NCBI GenBank assembly: GCA_965644295.1
Contig: CBFFRP010000440.1
Coordinates: 11,032-75,031, forward strand
Source: Paraphysomonas bandaiensis
Lineage: Eukaryota; Protista; Chrysophyceae
DNA length: 64,000 nt
Direction: 5' to 3'
Shown here: positions 4,058-10,779 of the stretch, piece by piece
How positions within the stretch are numbered: the stretch's first letter is position 1
Layout: each line of letters opens with the position of its first letter
Program-made: the position numbers and the translations under genes
The notes under the pieces: generated by a model
What the model was told of the DNA's origin: nothing
The model's input: the letters and a program-made list of their open reading frames with translations, nothing else
Databases searched by the model: none

Positions 4058-7000
4058 CTATGATGGAAGAAGAGTCTGAATCTTTGAGTGTACTTCACAT
4101 AAGTGATCAACATACGACATGCACCCTGTAGCCACAAATCAAAATCACATAAACAGTAAATCAATTCAAACAAACCATATATGGAGTCTTCTATCAAGCG
4201 AATACCAAACCGCAACACATCAGCTGAGTTGGAATTTAACTCTCCTCCCCAAACAATCTTCAACTCTACATAAAGAACACGGTGAATACGCAATAACATT
4301 TGATGGTAGAATGAATTGAACCTGGAGGGTAGGAACTATCCTCCCTTGCACACTGCACTATGTTATGGACTCGCAGAGAACGCTCCGAACGTGGAAGAAG
4401 GGCAGGTGGAATACTTCCGCTACTGTTGCATCTCATATTCCCTCGTCTAGAATCTGAGGCTGCGGAGGTGAAGGAACTAGCGCGGGAAAGGCAATCGCTC
4501 TCGACCACCTGATATTCTTTTCTATCAGCAGGAGGGATGGGGGAGGCATTGCTTGCAGGGGGAGAACTCCCAGGATTTGCGCCAAGGAGCTCACGAACTA
4601 TGTCCTGACTTGCACACCGACCAATATAGAGCCATAGAAACTCTCCATCATCCAGTAGATAGACACCTTCAGAGTCTATACTCTCAGCAGAACACTTCTT
4701 CCAGTCTGGCATCTGAATCTGTGACCCCTATACTCATGGCACGACACAATCATACTGTGATTACAACAAATGTAAATGGAGCGTACCTCCTCATCTCTAG
4801 TTGCATCAGGGATTACTTGGTACCCATCCCCCTCCTGAAGTGAATGCAGCGCGTAGAGCCTCGGATAGAGGCTGCGTACAGTCTCGCGCACAGACATTCG
4901 TAACATTGAAGTCAATTGGTAAGCACGTTCGCAGCACCCCGTACCCAACTTGTCAGACTGCCCCCCTGGTAGCCCAGCGCCACCTCTGTTCACAGCACTG
5001 TTGTGGAGTAGCATTGGATGCTTAAGCAAACTCAAAACATACAGCGGGAGCACTTTAAGAGCCTCGGGAAGGATCAGCTGGCCTTTTGGAGAGTGGGAGG
5101 AGCAGAGCACACGATACTTGAGCAATATATCAATGCACATATCCAGCAGACGTTGTCTGACGTTTTTCACGTTTCTGCTCCCGTTCGGTGTGTATGCATT
5201 GGCGGCTACTTTATCTGATGATAGTGGATACCGCAAAGCGCTGTCTGCAGCACATTTGCACATGTACGTTATCAGACAATCACAATCCGCATGTCGAAAG
5301 ATGACCACAGGATCTGTGGATGTATGAACCACTAAAGTGTGCACTCGCACAATGCGCTGCGCGGCGGGCTGAGACGTATAGAGCACAGCTAGTTGTAAAC
5401 AAAGTGGGTCACCATCCTTGAGAGAGCTTGAATTAGCTTGCAATAATAGACAGCAAGTTTGGTTGCGGTCCACACCACTGAGAATCACTTCCCCATCCTC
5501 AGGAATATAGCGGCCATCACCGTAATATTCACTCACTCTAAAACCCGCAGAGCATCGCAGCTTCATCACTGCCTCCGACCCGACAACACTCTGCACCGCG
5601 CCCAGCAATTGCTGTTTACATCATAAAGAGCTGCTGTAAAAAATACAAAATACTTACCGCTTGAAGTCTGTTTGCATTATCTTCCAGATGCAATGAGCCG
5701 GAAAATAAATGTAATACGCCTCCTGATGACCGGCAGATCTCTGCAAAGATTGCGCTGTTATCTGGGCTCGCGCGTCGTTGTTGCGTCATCAAATGAGCAG
5801 ATGAGGTTCCAGAAGGTCTTTCGGTCGATATATATTCCTCCTGCATCTCTGCGCTCAGACATGGTACGAAGAAGAAAATATCTACGCATGTGCCTTGATT
5901 GCTGAAAGTTTGCCCCAGGTCAATGTAACTCTGTAACGTCGCACGTTCCTCAGGTGAGAGATTCTTTTCTTGCTCTAATACACTCTCCAGGGAACCATAG
6001 TAACTATGCTCCTCAGGCGTACCGTATGTCGACAGCTTTGGCTTTCTTTTAATCTTTCCGAAACCTGGTTAGTATAGACATCGTGATAAATTATCCCATG
6101 AAATTTGCATCATACGTACCTATATCTGGGTTACTATCCGTCAGCAACAGCACACGGCCCCCTATCCCCTCCAGAGCCAGTTGTACTGCCTTGAGCGCTG
6201 CCGTTGGGCAAGAGTACGACAACATGTGACGACTACTATCCAGAGCTGCGGTGGAAGCTACACGTCTGCTGCCTGGCGAGTGACCCCCAGACAGAGGAAG
6301 TCGGGGGCCACGGGAGTTTAGAGGTGGGGCGGAAGCATCGGAACAGGAATCAACTAGTTCCGGGATGCGATCCAAAAGGATGTCAATGTCATCCATCTGC
6401 TCGCACAAATTCATTAGCCAGCTGGAAGGTGGAATGGCTGGAAAGGGGTCTTCCGGGTCTACCACGAACATACCTATACAGTATAAGGGATACATGGAAA
6501 GCGACAAAGAACATACTTATTGGTTCTGGGGCACCTCGTCTGACCCAATAGAACTGAAGTTGACTGCTAAATGTAAAAATTCCAACACGAATTAGTTCTG
6601 CTTCAACAGGACTGCCTTCGTCTTCCACTACAGTAGCTCCCTACATACATGTATTATGAATAATGATCCACATTACTGTTCCAAAGAAACTGTACCTCAT
6701 TGAGATCACTGAGTGGGTCGGTAGAGGGTGAAACCGAGCGGTCGGAAGTGGCCCACATAAATAGCTCCTGCAATGTGTGACGTACAGCATCCAGACTGGC
6801 AGATGCTGCTCCTGAAGCAAGAGCACGAGGAGAGACATCGATGCAGAATACATAAACTGGTTCCTGTGGGTCCTTAAGGCAATAATCTTTCGAGACTCTA
6901 AAGTCCACTGACCCACAGCATAGCTCAAATTTCGAATACCTATCAACTCGTTGAGAGGCTCCATCTAAAGAAGAGTAGTACCATGGTGCGGTCGTGTTAG

Positions 7001-8330
7001 TAGCAAAGCAGAGGTTACAGACCCACTTGTTCCCACCCTCCGTCCATGTTACATGTGGATTGATGTATGCACGACATCTCTCACATCTGACGGGGTTTCC
7101 ATCGTCACTACCATATTCCAAGCAGTCCACAAGTGGAACCTCACATTCTCCGCTCTCTGGTAGCGCAAAAGGGGTAGCAACCACAGCAAGGGGTAACATC
7201 ACCCTGGATGCGGTGGACCGGTCGGAAGGTGGCGCAACGGTGGACACCCGCATATATCTAGGGCCAGCATTGCCAGTGTCCACCGCTGTAAAGTTAGCAG
7301 TGGCTGAAGGAGGCACTCTCCGCGTTCCAAGTGAAGGGCGAGTATGATACAAGGATGGTGGTCCTCTTGTTGGAGGGCGAGGTCGGGGCATTTGGTTGAC
7401 ATCGATCCTTGAGCGGGGTGGGCTTCTGGATTTTTTCTTCGGTACCCCCACACCGCCCATGGCTGCACCTCCATCACGTTGAGCTCGCCGCATAGATGGA
7501 CTGTTGCACGTCCCTACTCCCTCCACATTTCTTGACCATTGGGGAGATTTAGAACGAGATCGAGAAATAGGAGGGCCTACCGTAGGCGGACCTAATTCTC
7601 TGCCCCGCTGTGTTTCAGAAGTTTGAGCACGCATCTTGGGTGCAGGTAAGGTGTGATTTGCCGGTGGTGGAGGGACACTATGAAATTCTGCCGCTGAAGA
7701 ATTGAGAACACTACCATACTCTGGACGGGTCTGCTGAAAAGGTTGATAGGCCTGATATTGGTTTTGCTGAACTGGTGGAGGAGGGATAGAAGGTGGTGGG
7801 AATGTGGGGGGAGGAGCCCCACTTTGCGGAGGAGGAGGGGCCAAATTCAGTGAAGGGGACTGGCTGATTGTACTGCTGTTCATAACTCCTGCTGCGGTGT
7901 TCGCCGTCTGAGATGGTGGAGATGCCACAGTAGCAGACGATGGCGGAGGCTGAATGGACGTCTGACTCGCCGGAAGGCGTGGAAACCGAGGATCCACAGA
8001 TCCAGGTGGACTATTGTCACGACTACTTGGAGTAATTGGAACTGCAAAGGGTTCATTTGGAGGGCTACTACTGAGTGATGGAGGGCTGTAGTCAGCCGGT
8101 CCGCTCTGTGATCGCTGTATCGGACCTCTGCTGTGACTCGGAGACGTAAACGACGGCAATTTCTTCAAACTCTTCGGTTCTGTGCTGCTCCCTCTATTGG
8201 TCCGAGGTGTGGAGAAACTGTTACCAGTCATAGACGACCCCTGTCTATTTAATACTTTAGGGTTATCACTAACTGGAGTCGTCACACTGCTGAACGACGC
8301 CGCTTTCTTTCTCTCGGGTGTTGTTGCCAT
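4058..8330 (-). CDS. SEC24: COPII coat subunit Sec24 (multi-exon)
   Basis: Pro/Ser-rich N-terminus, zinc finger CERCRAYINP...WVCNLC, trunk VYVFCIDVS, beta-sandwich AVMKLRCSAG...QLAVLYTS...RIVRVHT, helical QLILPEALKVLPLYVLSLLK, gelsolin-like GVYLLDDGEFLWLYIG, last exon MSYVDHLCEVHSKIQTLLPS* (stop 4058-4060). First ATG at 8330. Confidence 0.95.
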
Positions 8331-8884
8331 GCCTCTTGTGTTCAATACACGTAGCTGGCGTGCAGTGAATACACCCGATAGATGAAGGGGACGATGATGT
8401 TAAGGGATGACTAATAAAGAGATCACTGCGACCGACTGTCTCTCGCCTCTTGAAATGAAGCAATGAGGTACTGCTGTGTGTGTCTACAGCAGTACGGAGT
8501 ACTTCTCTATACACACACGTACTGCGGTACTTGTACAGCCTACAGACATCTAGACATTGTCGGTGTGCACTATACATACACCAGTACACACAATATAGTG
8601 TATAAAACCCGTATATCCTAACGAATATCTGTGTATTTGTGTATTCCAGGAGGCAGGTACAGTATTTCATAGTATTTCATGGTTGTGCAAACAACAAGCA
8701 TACAGGAACTTCTGCATGTATTCCTGCAATATTCTTCTCTGTATTCGTATGGTATACTGCTGTATATTGTACTGTGGTTTTAGTTGTGCTGTATGTGCGT
8801 CTGTGCATTGAGTTTATTTATTGGCTTGTGAACTGAAGCAGTCAGCCATAACTTCATCTCTGCTATTGACTCTCACCCTCCTAT

Positions 8885-10263
8885 ATGGTTCAATTGTTCC
8901 TAGTAGGCGTGGGACCTAGCAGGTCCCTCTGTGTGGAGGATTCATGCAGTGTTGAGGACTTTCACTCTATTGTTTCCAGCAGCCTTCAAATCCCTCGTGA
9001 GGGTTTTTATCTTTCGTCTTTGGGAGGAACTCGATGTTTTTCTTCTGGTTTGATAGGAGAAAATATTCAAGATGGTTCATCCGTGCAGGTGAAGCTGAGG
9101 GTCAGAGGAGGTATTGACTTTCAGCATCGAGAGGGGTCGAAAATAGGATCAGGCGGACACCTATCGGAGTCTCAGGCTGCATTGGAACGTAAAGAGCGCC
9201 TGAGAAAAATTGCACTCGAAACCATAGATATTACGAAGGATCCGTACATTATGAGGAATCACTTGGGTACATATGAATGCAAATTATGTTTGACACTACA
9301 CAGCAATGAAGGGAACTATCTTGCTCATACACAAGGAAAGAGGCACCAGGTATGCAAGATATGACATACTCATATACACTTCAGTTTCATTACACTGTTT
9401 TTATCATTTGAGTGCCTCAGATTGAAAGTTTGTTTTACTAGAATACCTTATTGATGCATCGATTATTTGCACACATCTTGTAGTCATGGTGTCTGTGTGT
9501 ATAGTCTAATCTTGCTCGACGAGCGGCGATGGAAGCTCGCAACGCTCCGTCGAAGCCCATAACATCTACTGGGGAGACCACAGTAAAACACACGATACGC
9601 ATTGGCCGGCCCGGGTACAAGGTAAGTTGTCTACATTATTTCATCTACACACCTTTACTATGTGTACTGATTTTCAAGCTTCTATTTGTATGCTGGGATT
9701 TGATTACACTTCTGCCGTATAAATATCTATCCATGCATAATATGCATTGACTAGCCGAGTACATATGCGTAAATGTTTCACTTCTGTAATATTTAGGTCA
9801 CGAAGAGTAGAGACATGCTGACGCGGCAGAGATCTCTTACTTTTGAGGTTGATTACCCGCAGACAGAAGAAGGAGTTCAACCTCGACACAGATTCATGAG
9901 TGCGTATGAGCAGAAAGTCGAAGCCCCTGATAAAAACTACCAATATGTTCTTTTTGCTTGCGATCCGTACGAAACTATCGCATTCAAGGTAGCCGCAATC
10001 AGCATTTTTGTGTGCATCGTGTTTATTATATATGGAATCACATTTGTCCTCAATATTTTAATAGTTTATTGTTTAACTGGTTTACCTTCTAGATCCCTAA
10101 TGTCCCTGTGGATAAGAGCGAAGGACGGTTTTTTACAAACTGGGATGCGAAGAACAGAAAATTTATCCTACAACTCTATTTTCTGGAAAAGGAGCAGCAA
10201 GCAGAAATGGGCCAGAAAAGCTCTGCTCCCCCGCCTCCTAGACCTGTTCTCAGATACAACTAG
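8885..10263 (+). CDS. SF3A2: Splicing factor 3A subunit 2 (Prp11/SF3a66) with a 76-aa N-terminal ubiquitin-like leader. Exons 8885-9349, 9505-9621, 9797-9988, 10093-10263
   Basis: DFQHREGSKIGSGG, ERLRKIALETIDITKDPYIMRNHLGTYECKLCLTLHSNEGNYLAHTQGKRHQ (U1C-type zinc finger), IGRPGYKVTK, PRHRFMSAYEQKVE, ACDPYETIAFKIP. GT-AG introns preserve the frame. Confidence 0.97.
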
Positions 10264-10779
10264 TCTACTACCTGAATTCTTGGCTTGATAGCAGATACAT
10301 GTCTAGTATTTTGGAACCTAGCAGAGTGTGGTGTTTGGTATCGTGCAGTTGAGAGCAGAGATAAGAGCAGATCGCATGTGTTGATACGGTCACAATGGCA
10401 CGTGCTCTTTCTTGCAGTAAATTAATATATATTGTCATTGCTGAATCTTTTTGTGATATTTCCTCGTAGCGACACAACGCGAAACACTTTTGGTTTTAGT
10501 CGTTTGTTTTGTGTGTGTTAACATGAATTCATCAGATAAGTACCATGTGATAATATATCTATTATATCCTTTATCCTTTCCATAGCTATTTCATGTGATT
10601 CCTACGAGATCAATAAGGACTACACGACTACACGATTAATATCTACCTCATGTGAGGAAAAAAAATACAAATATAGGACTGATGGATTTTATTATTTTAA
10701 TGGAGCACTGACCTCTGTACACTAGGTACCTCAGTATATATATTTTGTAAGGGGGATATCTTACAAAATCGAGCGCAAT

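Follow-up and report, generated by a model that had tools for sequence, protein, structure and literature searches.

The gene of SF3A2 (SF3a66/Prp11), a core protein of the U2 small nuclear ribonucleoprotein (snRNP), was found in the chrysophyte Paraphysomonas bandaiensis to begin with a ubiquitin-like (UBL) leader of 76 residues, the terminal di-glycine (GG) of which adjoins the native first residue of SF3A2 directly, with no linker between them. The gene is located in a stretch of 64,000 nucleotides (assembly GCA_965644295.1, contig CBFFRP010000440.1, positions 11,032 to 75,031 of the forward strand), which is the whole piece of DNA analysed and is called the window below; all positions are those of the window. 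As an observation, this feature is confirmed to be real, ancient and apparently undescribed, and the mechanism proposed for it is of a familiar type. In our opinion, SF3A2 is probably made here as a precursor of the ubiquitin-fusion type, whose leader would be cut off after GG by housekeeping deubiquitinases, and the probability of this reading may be put at about 0.7.

Direct translation of 8885-9349 on the forward strand gives 155 codons without a stop. The leader (8885-9112) has the C-terminal sequence LRVRGG and runs in frame into SF3A2, with no intron or stop between the two parts. The codons of the junction are GGA GGT ATT, where Gly75 corresponds to 9107-9109, Gly76 to 9110-9112 and Ile77 to 9113-9115, and Ile77 is followed by DFQHREGSKIGSGG. 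The ATT of Ile77 occupies the position of the start ATG in other SF3A2 genes. In fact, residues 77-155 were aligned without gaps with residues 1-79 of human SF3A2 (E 1.5e-36), and Ile77 stands opposite Met1. An in-frame TGA, read directly from the sequence, precedes the leader; ATG 8885 is the first AUG of the transcript, with no ATG from about 8827-8852 up to it, and downstream of it Met does not recur in frame before residue 123. Since this residue is situated inside the conserved core of SF3A2, the full-length protein is translatable only through the leader. Thus, the initial annotation, which had described a 76-residue leader with a GG end continuing in frame into SF3A2 and an initiator Met replaced by ATT, so that the protein could be obtained only via the leader, was borne out on both points. 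The gene model includes four exons (8885-9349, 9505-9621, 9797-9988 and 10093-10263) and 315 residues, and its features are as follows.

8827-8884, forward strand: 5' untranslated region (UTR), from the contig ends at 8827-8852, with the in-frame TGA at 8867-8869 and no upstream ATG
8885-9112, forward strand: ubiquitin-like leader, 76 codons, LRVRGG end (translation, predicted beta-grasp fold)
9107-9115, forward strand: junction Gly75-Gly76/Ile77, presumed deubiquitinase cleavage site (sequence, conservation in homologues, alignment with human SF3A2)
9113-9349, forward strand: remainder of exon 1, equivalent to SF3A2 residues 1-79, with the N-terminal peptide, a helix and a matrin-type C2H2 zinc finger (Pfam, alignment)
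9272-9346, forward strand: zf-met domain inside exon 1 (Pfam)
9350-9504, forward strand: intron 1, GT..AG, 155 nt (joint in contigs of four runs)
9505-9621, forward strand: exon 2, 39 codons (sequence, RNA contigs)
9622-9796, forward strand: intron 2, GT..AG, 175 nt (RNA contigs)
9797-9988, forward strand: exon 3, 64 codons, SF3A2 domain PF16835 (Pfam, RNA contigs)
9989-10092, forward strand: intron 3, GT..AG, 104 nt (RNA contigs)
10093-10263, forward strand: coding part of exon 4, with the end of the SF3A2 domain, a short Pro-rich tail and the stop TAG at 10261-10263 (sequence, Pfam, RNA contigs)
10264-10445, forward strand: 3' UTR, with poly(A) at about 10445 (contig with a loose A22 end)

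The joining of the leader with SF3A2 was also found in RNA. Logan contigs of four RNA runs, namely one poly(A)-selected marine metatranscriptome and three organism runs (A-C), representing at least three studies, were aligned to 8300-10700; such contigs give neither transcription starts nor expression levels. In each run, one contig spans 8827/8852-9349 unbroken, with the leader contiguous with SF3A2, and the three introns, 9350-9504, 9622-9796 and 9989-10092, are spliced out exactly. The 3' ends of the contigs are at 10371-10445, and one of them carries an A22 tail at 10445. Being spliced and polyadenylated, these contigs are derived from mRNA. The initial annotation had proposed to look for RNA across 9100-9130, because GAG/GT at 9110/9111 might serve as a splice donor. 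No joint within the leader was found in the contigs of the four runs, and both the use of this donor and an upstream exon supplying Met are ruled out by them. It is extremely improbable that the leader is untranslated 5' sequence or part of another gene or exon arrangement, because the contigs of all four runs are contiguous over 8852-9349, the upstream in-frame stop and the first AUG at 8885 leave no alternative SF3A2 start, and hundreds of homologues have the same arrangement.

The identity of the second part of the protein was established by Pfam searches made exon by exon, not on the joined protein. A zf-met match was found at residues 130-154 (29.5-30.9 bits), exon 3 matched the SF3A2 domain PF16835 with 87.4 bits at a cut-off of 27 bits, and exon 4 weakly continues this domain (profile positions 73-96). 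The 62.6-Mb assembly contains a single SF3A2 locus. Judging by these sequence comparisons, it is the single-copy gene of the U2 snRNP protein SF3A2.

Since Pfam gave no match for the leader, its fold was shown by structure prediction instead. Using AlphaFold2 with an alignment of 65 sequences, a predicted local distance difference test score (pLDDT) of 91-95 was obtained over residues 1-72, and the predicted elements, i.e. strands 2-7 and 13-17, helix 23-34, strand 41-45, short helix 57-60 and strand 66-71, follow the order of ubiquitin with its beta-beta-alpha-beta-beta-3(10)-beta topology. The best Foldseek matches of this model in PDB are ubiquitin (target-normalised template-modelling score 0.78-0.84, root-mean-square deviation 1.6-2.6 A, identity 25-29%). 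Residues 78-93, which constitute the junction region, are predicted to be disordered (pLDDT <50). Based on the model, the leader is clearly a ubiquitin-fold (beta-grasp) domain, as the initial annotation had expected. Canonical polyubiquitin arrays and short genes of ubiquitin fusions are present in the same genome, whose PF00240 matches do not include the SF3A2 leader; at the level of sequence, the leader is not the ubiquitin of this organism. In brown-algal, oomycete and other orthologues, a PF00240 match does occur at the equivalent place.

Homologues turned out to be numerous. A word-indexed search with exon 1 gave more than 100 proteins aligned over the whole query, several of them with PF00240 and zf-met, and further searches seeded with brown-algal and pennate-diatom homologues, together with a HMMER scan that exhaustively covered 1.84 billion representatives, led to a collection of 512 proteins. 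In 378 of them, the SF3A2 start motif is preceded by a leader of 20 residues or more, and GG directly precedes SF3A2 residue 1 in 360 of these 378, which is the junction that the initial annotation had proposed to survey in related protists; the counts refer to cluster representatives, not to independent lineages. The 18 exceptions are mostly either shifts of register (GG-M-x-D) or proteins of animal type that bear spurious extensions at the N-terminus. Ile comes after GG in 273 proteins (76% of the 360), Met occupies this place in 60, and the others have Val (11), Thr (10) or Leu (6), never Pro. In alignments of 28 and 65 sequences, G75, G76 and D78 are invariant and other leader positions are variable, and the peptide IDFQHREG is strongly conserved at the SF3A2 start. 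Such a junction shared by hundreds of homologues is far beyond chance.

The two parts of the protein evolve very differently. Among 179 leaders of 70-90 residues, the mean pairwise identity is 25%, versus 82% for the N-terminal 79 residues of SF3A2. The leaders retain the hydrophobic core pattern of ubiquitin and its G-I/V-P turn, and in the tail the positions of ubiquitin L71, R72 and L73 are mostly kept along with GG, position 74 being variable. In pennate diatoms, the leaders have grown by low-complexity inserts to as many as about 560 residues, still ending in ...L-x-L-x-GG before x-DRQNRVGSK. Predicted leaders of P0274, P0276, P0277, P0379 and their relatives from this group are 300-560 residues long and contain Ser/Thr/Gln runs before the LxLxGG end.

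According to the database names of the matches, all named carriers of the fusion are stramenopiles.

Brown algae: Ectocarpus, Hapterophycus, Choristocarpus, Discosporangium
Xanthophytes: Tribonema, Heterococcus
Other small ochrophyte lineages: Chrysoparadoxa, Phaeothamnion
Raphidophytes: Heterosigma, Fibrocapsa
Chrysophytes and synurophytes: Mallomonas, Dinobryon, Chlorochromonas, an ochromonad
Chrysophaeum
Pennate diatoms: Nitzschia, Seminavis, Cylindrotheca
Oomycetes: Saprolegnia, Thraustotheca, Pythium

The presence of the fusion in oomycetes and in most ochrophyte classes indicates that it predates the oomycete/ochrophyte split and existed at least in their common ancestor. The label of the ciliate Tiarina fusus on a UBL-SF3A2 of pennate-diatom type from MMETSP0472 (P0461) was set aside, in our judgement, as probable contamination by prey. 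Three ENA proteins (P0197, P0214 and P0280) have a canonical MQIF-type ubiquitin-like leader and GG-MDMQNR or GG-IDRNNR junctions, and with this divergent group the fusion might reach outside the named ones.

The pattern of conservation bears on the possible fate of the leader. Cleavage would release it with a free GG C-terminus and, by prediction, a stable beta-grasp, in amounts equimolar with SF3A2, and it might then act as a ubiquitin-like modifier or signalling protein. Such a function is very unlikely. Equivalents of the ubiquitin L8/I44/V70 patch and of K48 and K63 are not conserved across the 179 leaders, nor is any surface patch; the window's leader itself has G8, S44 and K70 at the patch positions, K70 is its single Lys, and there is none at positions 6, 11, 27, 29, 33, 48 or 63. 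The low mean identity, the large insertions in pennates and the repeated loss of the leader speak against this function as well. Having neither a conserved ubiquitin interaction surface nor conserved lysines, the leader is probably not a modifier, and once free it is probably inert.

Cleavage after Gly76 seems to us to be the most likely mechanism, and we hold it to be probable. An N-terminal ubiquitin fold, GG placed exactly before the first residue of the partner, a residue other than Pro next to it and a flexible junction together form the signature of precursors processed by deubiquitinases, such as Ub-eL40, Ub-eS31, FUBI-eS30 and Sde2. The leader would be removed after Gly76 by ordinary ubiquitin C-terminal hydrolases of the ubiquitin-specific protease (USP) or ubiquitin C-terminal hydrolase (UCH) type, and the genome encodes deubiquitinases of the UCH type and many of the USP type. 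This cutting may take place during or soon after translation and is probably constitutive and co-translational, like that of the ribosomal fusions; the mature SF3A2 so released would have a free Ile at its N-terminus. As judged from homology with the human and yeast structures of the activated spliceosome (Bact), the conserved N-terminal peptide of SF3A2 would then be threaded into the active site. That the N-terminus of SF3A2/Prp11 reaches the 5' splice site in this state, as the initial annotation had stated, is supported by structural work (PMC5835773), and a folded 8.5-kDa domain fixed at the N-terminus would presumably be hard to accommodate there.

Several data weigh against the cleavage of the leader as a ubiquitin-type precursor. 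Its similarity to ubiquitin is weak: PF00240 gave no match with the window's leader at E<=1, and phmmer aligned residues 9-76 with ubiquitin 9-76 without gaps at only E 0.2-1 against single ubiquitin chains in PDB, so that recognition by deubiquitinases is not guaranteed. (Very low phmmer E-values against polyubiquitin chains result from the summation of nine weak repeats.) One modelled pennate-diatom leader (P0271, 76 residues) has no clear N-terminal beta-hairpin and is less clearly a complete beta-grasp, which means that some leaders may not retain the complete ubiquitin fold. No matching peptide was found in an N-terminome data set of Thalassiosira pseudonana. The dependence of the homologue counts on cluster representatives should also be mentioned here. 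Finally, SF3a offers a precedent of its own, because another subunit of the same complex, SF3A1, has an RGG-ended UBL that is reported to be uncleaved and to bind RNA (PMC8833184); an uncleaved role is thus precedented within SF3a.

By analogy with SF3A1, the leader may be supposed to remain as a permanent, uncleaved UBL domain of SF3A2, serving as a module for interaction or RNA binding in the U2 snRNP. The SF3A1 UBL with its RGG tail is reported to bind stem-loop 4 of U1 snRNA without processing (PMC6795144 and PMC8833184). Cleavage does not affect most UBL domains that form part of larger proteins. However, integral UBL domains normally have no GG exactly at the first residue of the partner, whereas GG is found here almost universally, and the remainder of the leader has drifted to 25% identity, tolerates insertions of hundreds of residues and shows no conserved surface patch. 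The N-terminus of SF3A2 must enter the active site (PMC5835773), and lineages without the leader exist. Moreover, SF3A1 of the same genome (L005:2278-2982, G000 contig C59) keeps its own C-terminal UBL, the RSRGGKR tail of which is similar to the human RGG tail. Relocation of the SF3A1 UBL to SF3A2 is ruled out by this finding, and the SF3A2 leader is an addition. On balance, a permanent UBL is unlikely, and cleavage remains the preferred reading.

The lineages that have dispensed with the leader are also instructive. In a compact marine eukaryote genome (ENA metagenome contig, L003:2755-3010; also L002 and L004), SF3A2 starts with MSG-IDFQHREG and lacks a UBL leader. An in-frame stop is located two codons upstream, and the previous gene, that of a MOZ/SAS acetyltransferase, is 245 nt away; the stop, this short gap and the absence of an open frame rule out a hidden upstream UBL exon. 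The gene looks like a case of secondary loss. One MMETSP transcript encodes SF3A2 starting with M-IDFQ, and in a further compact genome the gene is leaderless and starts with MDFQNR. In the raphid pennate Fistulifera solaris (GCA_002217885.1, L006:1490-1510), leaderless SF3A2 starts with M-DRQNR, unlike that of the related pennates Nitzschia, Seminavis and Cylindrotheca, which keep the leader; an annotation error is ruled out, since a stop precedes the ATG by three codons. Because the MSG-IDFQ and M-IDFQ forms carry the derived Ile, they must have descended from fused ancestors.

These forms suggest how a rapidly drifting leader may have been retained for so long. Replacement of the internal ATG by ATT, ATC or ATA would have left the leader as the sole source of a start codon, acting as a ratchet, and being the only such source would help to explain its retention despite the drift of its sequence. 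Met occupies the junction in the leaderless pennate forms, as it does in their GG-M relatives, and the leaderless forms bearing Ile have gained a new ATG just upstream; both are consistent with a ratchet. Taken together, the leaderless lineages mean that neither the leader nor the exact Ile N-terminus is indispensable.

This conclusion concerns the most far-reaching part of the initial annotation, which had proposed an Sde2-like proteolytic switch exposing an exact Ile N-terminus that is also a type-2 N-degron. In such a regulated switch, the exposed Ile would be the required N-terminal residue and would also serve for clearing unassembled SF3A2. Ile does follow GG in 273 of the 360 leaders, IDFQHREG is strongly conserved, and the SF3A2 N-terminus is positioned at the 5' splice site in Bact. 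The function of Sde2 needs both UBL removal and an exposed Lys (PMC9508853), and Sde2 is reported to be an N-end-rule substrate (PMC6486553). However, the exposed residue is variable: besides the Met, Val, Thr and Leu variants counted above, the GG-M junction is characteristic of oomycetes, xanthophytes and Phaeothamnion. The MSG-IDFQ, M-IDFQ and leaderless M-DRQNR starts argue that the exact Ile N-terminus and processing are dispensable, and nothing points to regulated rather than constitutive processing. Ile is not known to be recognized as an N-degron in stramenopiles, which also counts against an Ile N-degron. Thus, the fusion and the GG junction on which the proposal was based stand, as does the prevalence of Ile, and the switch and degron parts are weakened and lack support. 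The cargo is SF3A2 and not Sde2. A regulated switch of this kind is unlikely. A broader version, in which UBL removal would be obligatory, possibly regulated, and would gate the entry of the SF3A2 N-terminus into the catalytic centre, with unacetylated Ile acting additionally as a degron for SF3A2 outside SF3a, also seems rather unlikely to us.

Upstream of SF3A2, a long open reading frame was observed on the reverse strand (6654-8428); its N-terminal half is rich in Pro and Ser, and it also includes a Sec24-like zinc-finger region. The transcript contigs of X5 and X6 terminate at about 8428, from which it follows that this gene and SF3A2 are transcribed divergently, about 400 nt apart (8428-8827).

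No description of a UBL-SF3A2 fusion was found in the literature searched, which was without most subscription journals; within this scope, the suggestion of the initial annotation that the fusion is undescribed holds. The architecture itself is already in databases, since orthologues with annotated ubiquitin, zf-met and SF3A2 domains are deposited in NCBI and UniProt under such names as "Matrin-type domain-containing protein" and "unnamed protein product", and a prior description is possible.

Summarizing the significance of these data, a core, universally conserved subunit of the spliceosome appears to be made as a ubiquitin-fold precursor across a major lineage that includes diatoms, brown algae and oomycete pathogens. 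If the cleavage is real, a core protein of the spliceosome is to be added to the few natural precursors known as ubiquitin/UBL fusions. If, in addition, maturation proves to be gated, this would be a second, independently evolved splicing factor activated through a ubiquitin fold, besides Sde2, and the factor would here be a core subunit of the U2 snRNP. The natural variants (Ile, Met, Val or Thr after GG, leaderless forms and leaders from 76 to about 560 residues) bear on the importance of the exact SF3A2 N-terminus at the 5' splice site. The loss of an internal start codon would be a way of locking in an otherwise drifting leader. As a rare genomic change, the fusion may be a useful character for stramenopile relationships. 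For annotation, SF3A2 models that start at an internal Met or lack the leader deserve checking.

Among the known systems, Sde2 of Schizosaccharomyces pombe and human is a splicing factor with an N-terminal UBL that is activated by UBL removal (PMC9508853; PMC13572447). The USP-type enzymes Ubp5/Ubp15 and USP5 cut at its GG site, after which the N-terminus so formed enters the spliceosome (PMC9508853, PMC13572447). Sde2 and UBL-SF3A2 have in common the plan of an N-terminal UBL with GG on a splicing factor, but their cargoes are unrelated. SF3A2 is a core subunit, unlike Sde2 with its auxiliary, intron-specific role; the exposed Lys of Sde2 is essential and is an N-degron, whereas Ile, Met, Val, Thr or Leu may be exposed in SF3A2 and leaderless lineages exist. 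A profile search of the genome for the Sde2 UBL (PF13019) gave no match, and it is uninformative, since the control matched nowhere either. The UBL of SF3A1 (SF3a120) shares with the SF3A2 leader the fold, an RGG-type tail and membership in the same SF3a heterotrimer, but it is C-terminal, uncleaved and bound to stem-loop 4 of U1 snRNA, whereas the SF3A2 leader is N-terminal.

Ubiquitin fusions of algae, e.g. Ub-NiSOD (PMC6332867), are similar in having N-terminal ubiquitin on a non-ribosomal partner, in being patchily distributed in protists and in being easily missed by annotation; the SF3A2 leader, in contrast, has diverged far from ubiquitin. The survey of Guillardia and Bigelowiella by Sibbald et al. 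(2019) makes no mention of SF3A2 or splicing (PMC6332867). The ribosomal fusions Ub-eL40, Ub-eS31 and FUBI-eS30 differ in several respects. The cargo considered here is spliceosomal and belongs to the U2 snRNP, the leader is a fast-evolving UBL and not ubiquitin, the named carriers are restricted to stramenopiles, and its cleavage is something that we infer. In their construction, however, they are the same: ubiquitin or a UBL, about 76 residues long and ending in GG, stands at the N-terminus and is joined to the first residue of a subunit of a large ribonucleoprotein, the leader is cut by general deubiquitinases, and the cargo, as in UBL-SF3A2, needs this leader to be made.

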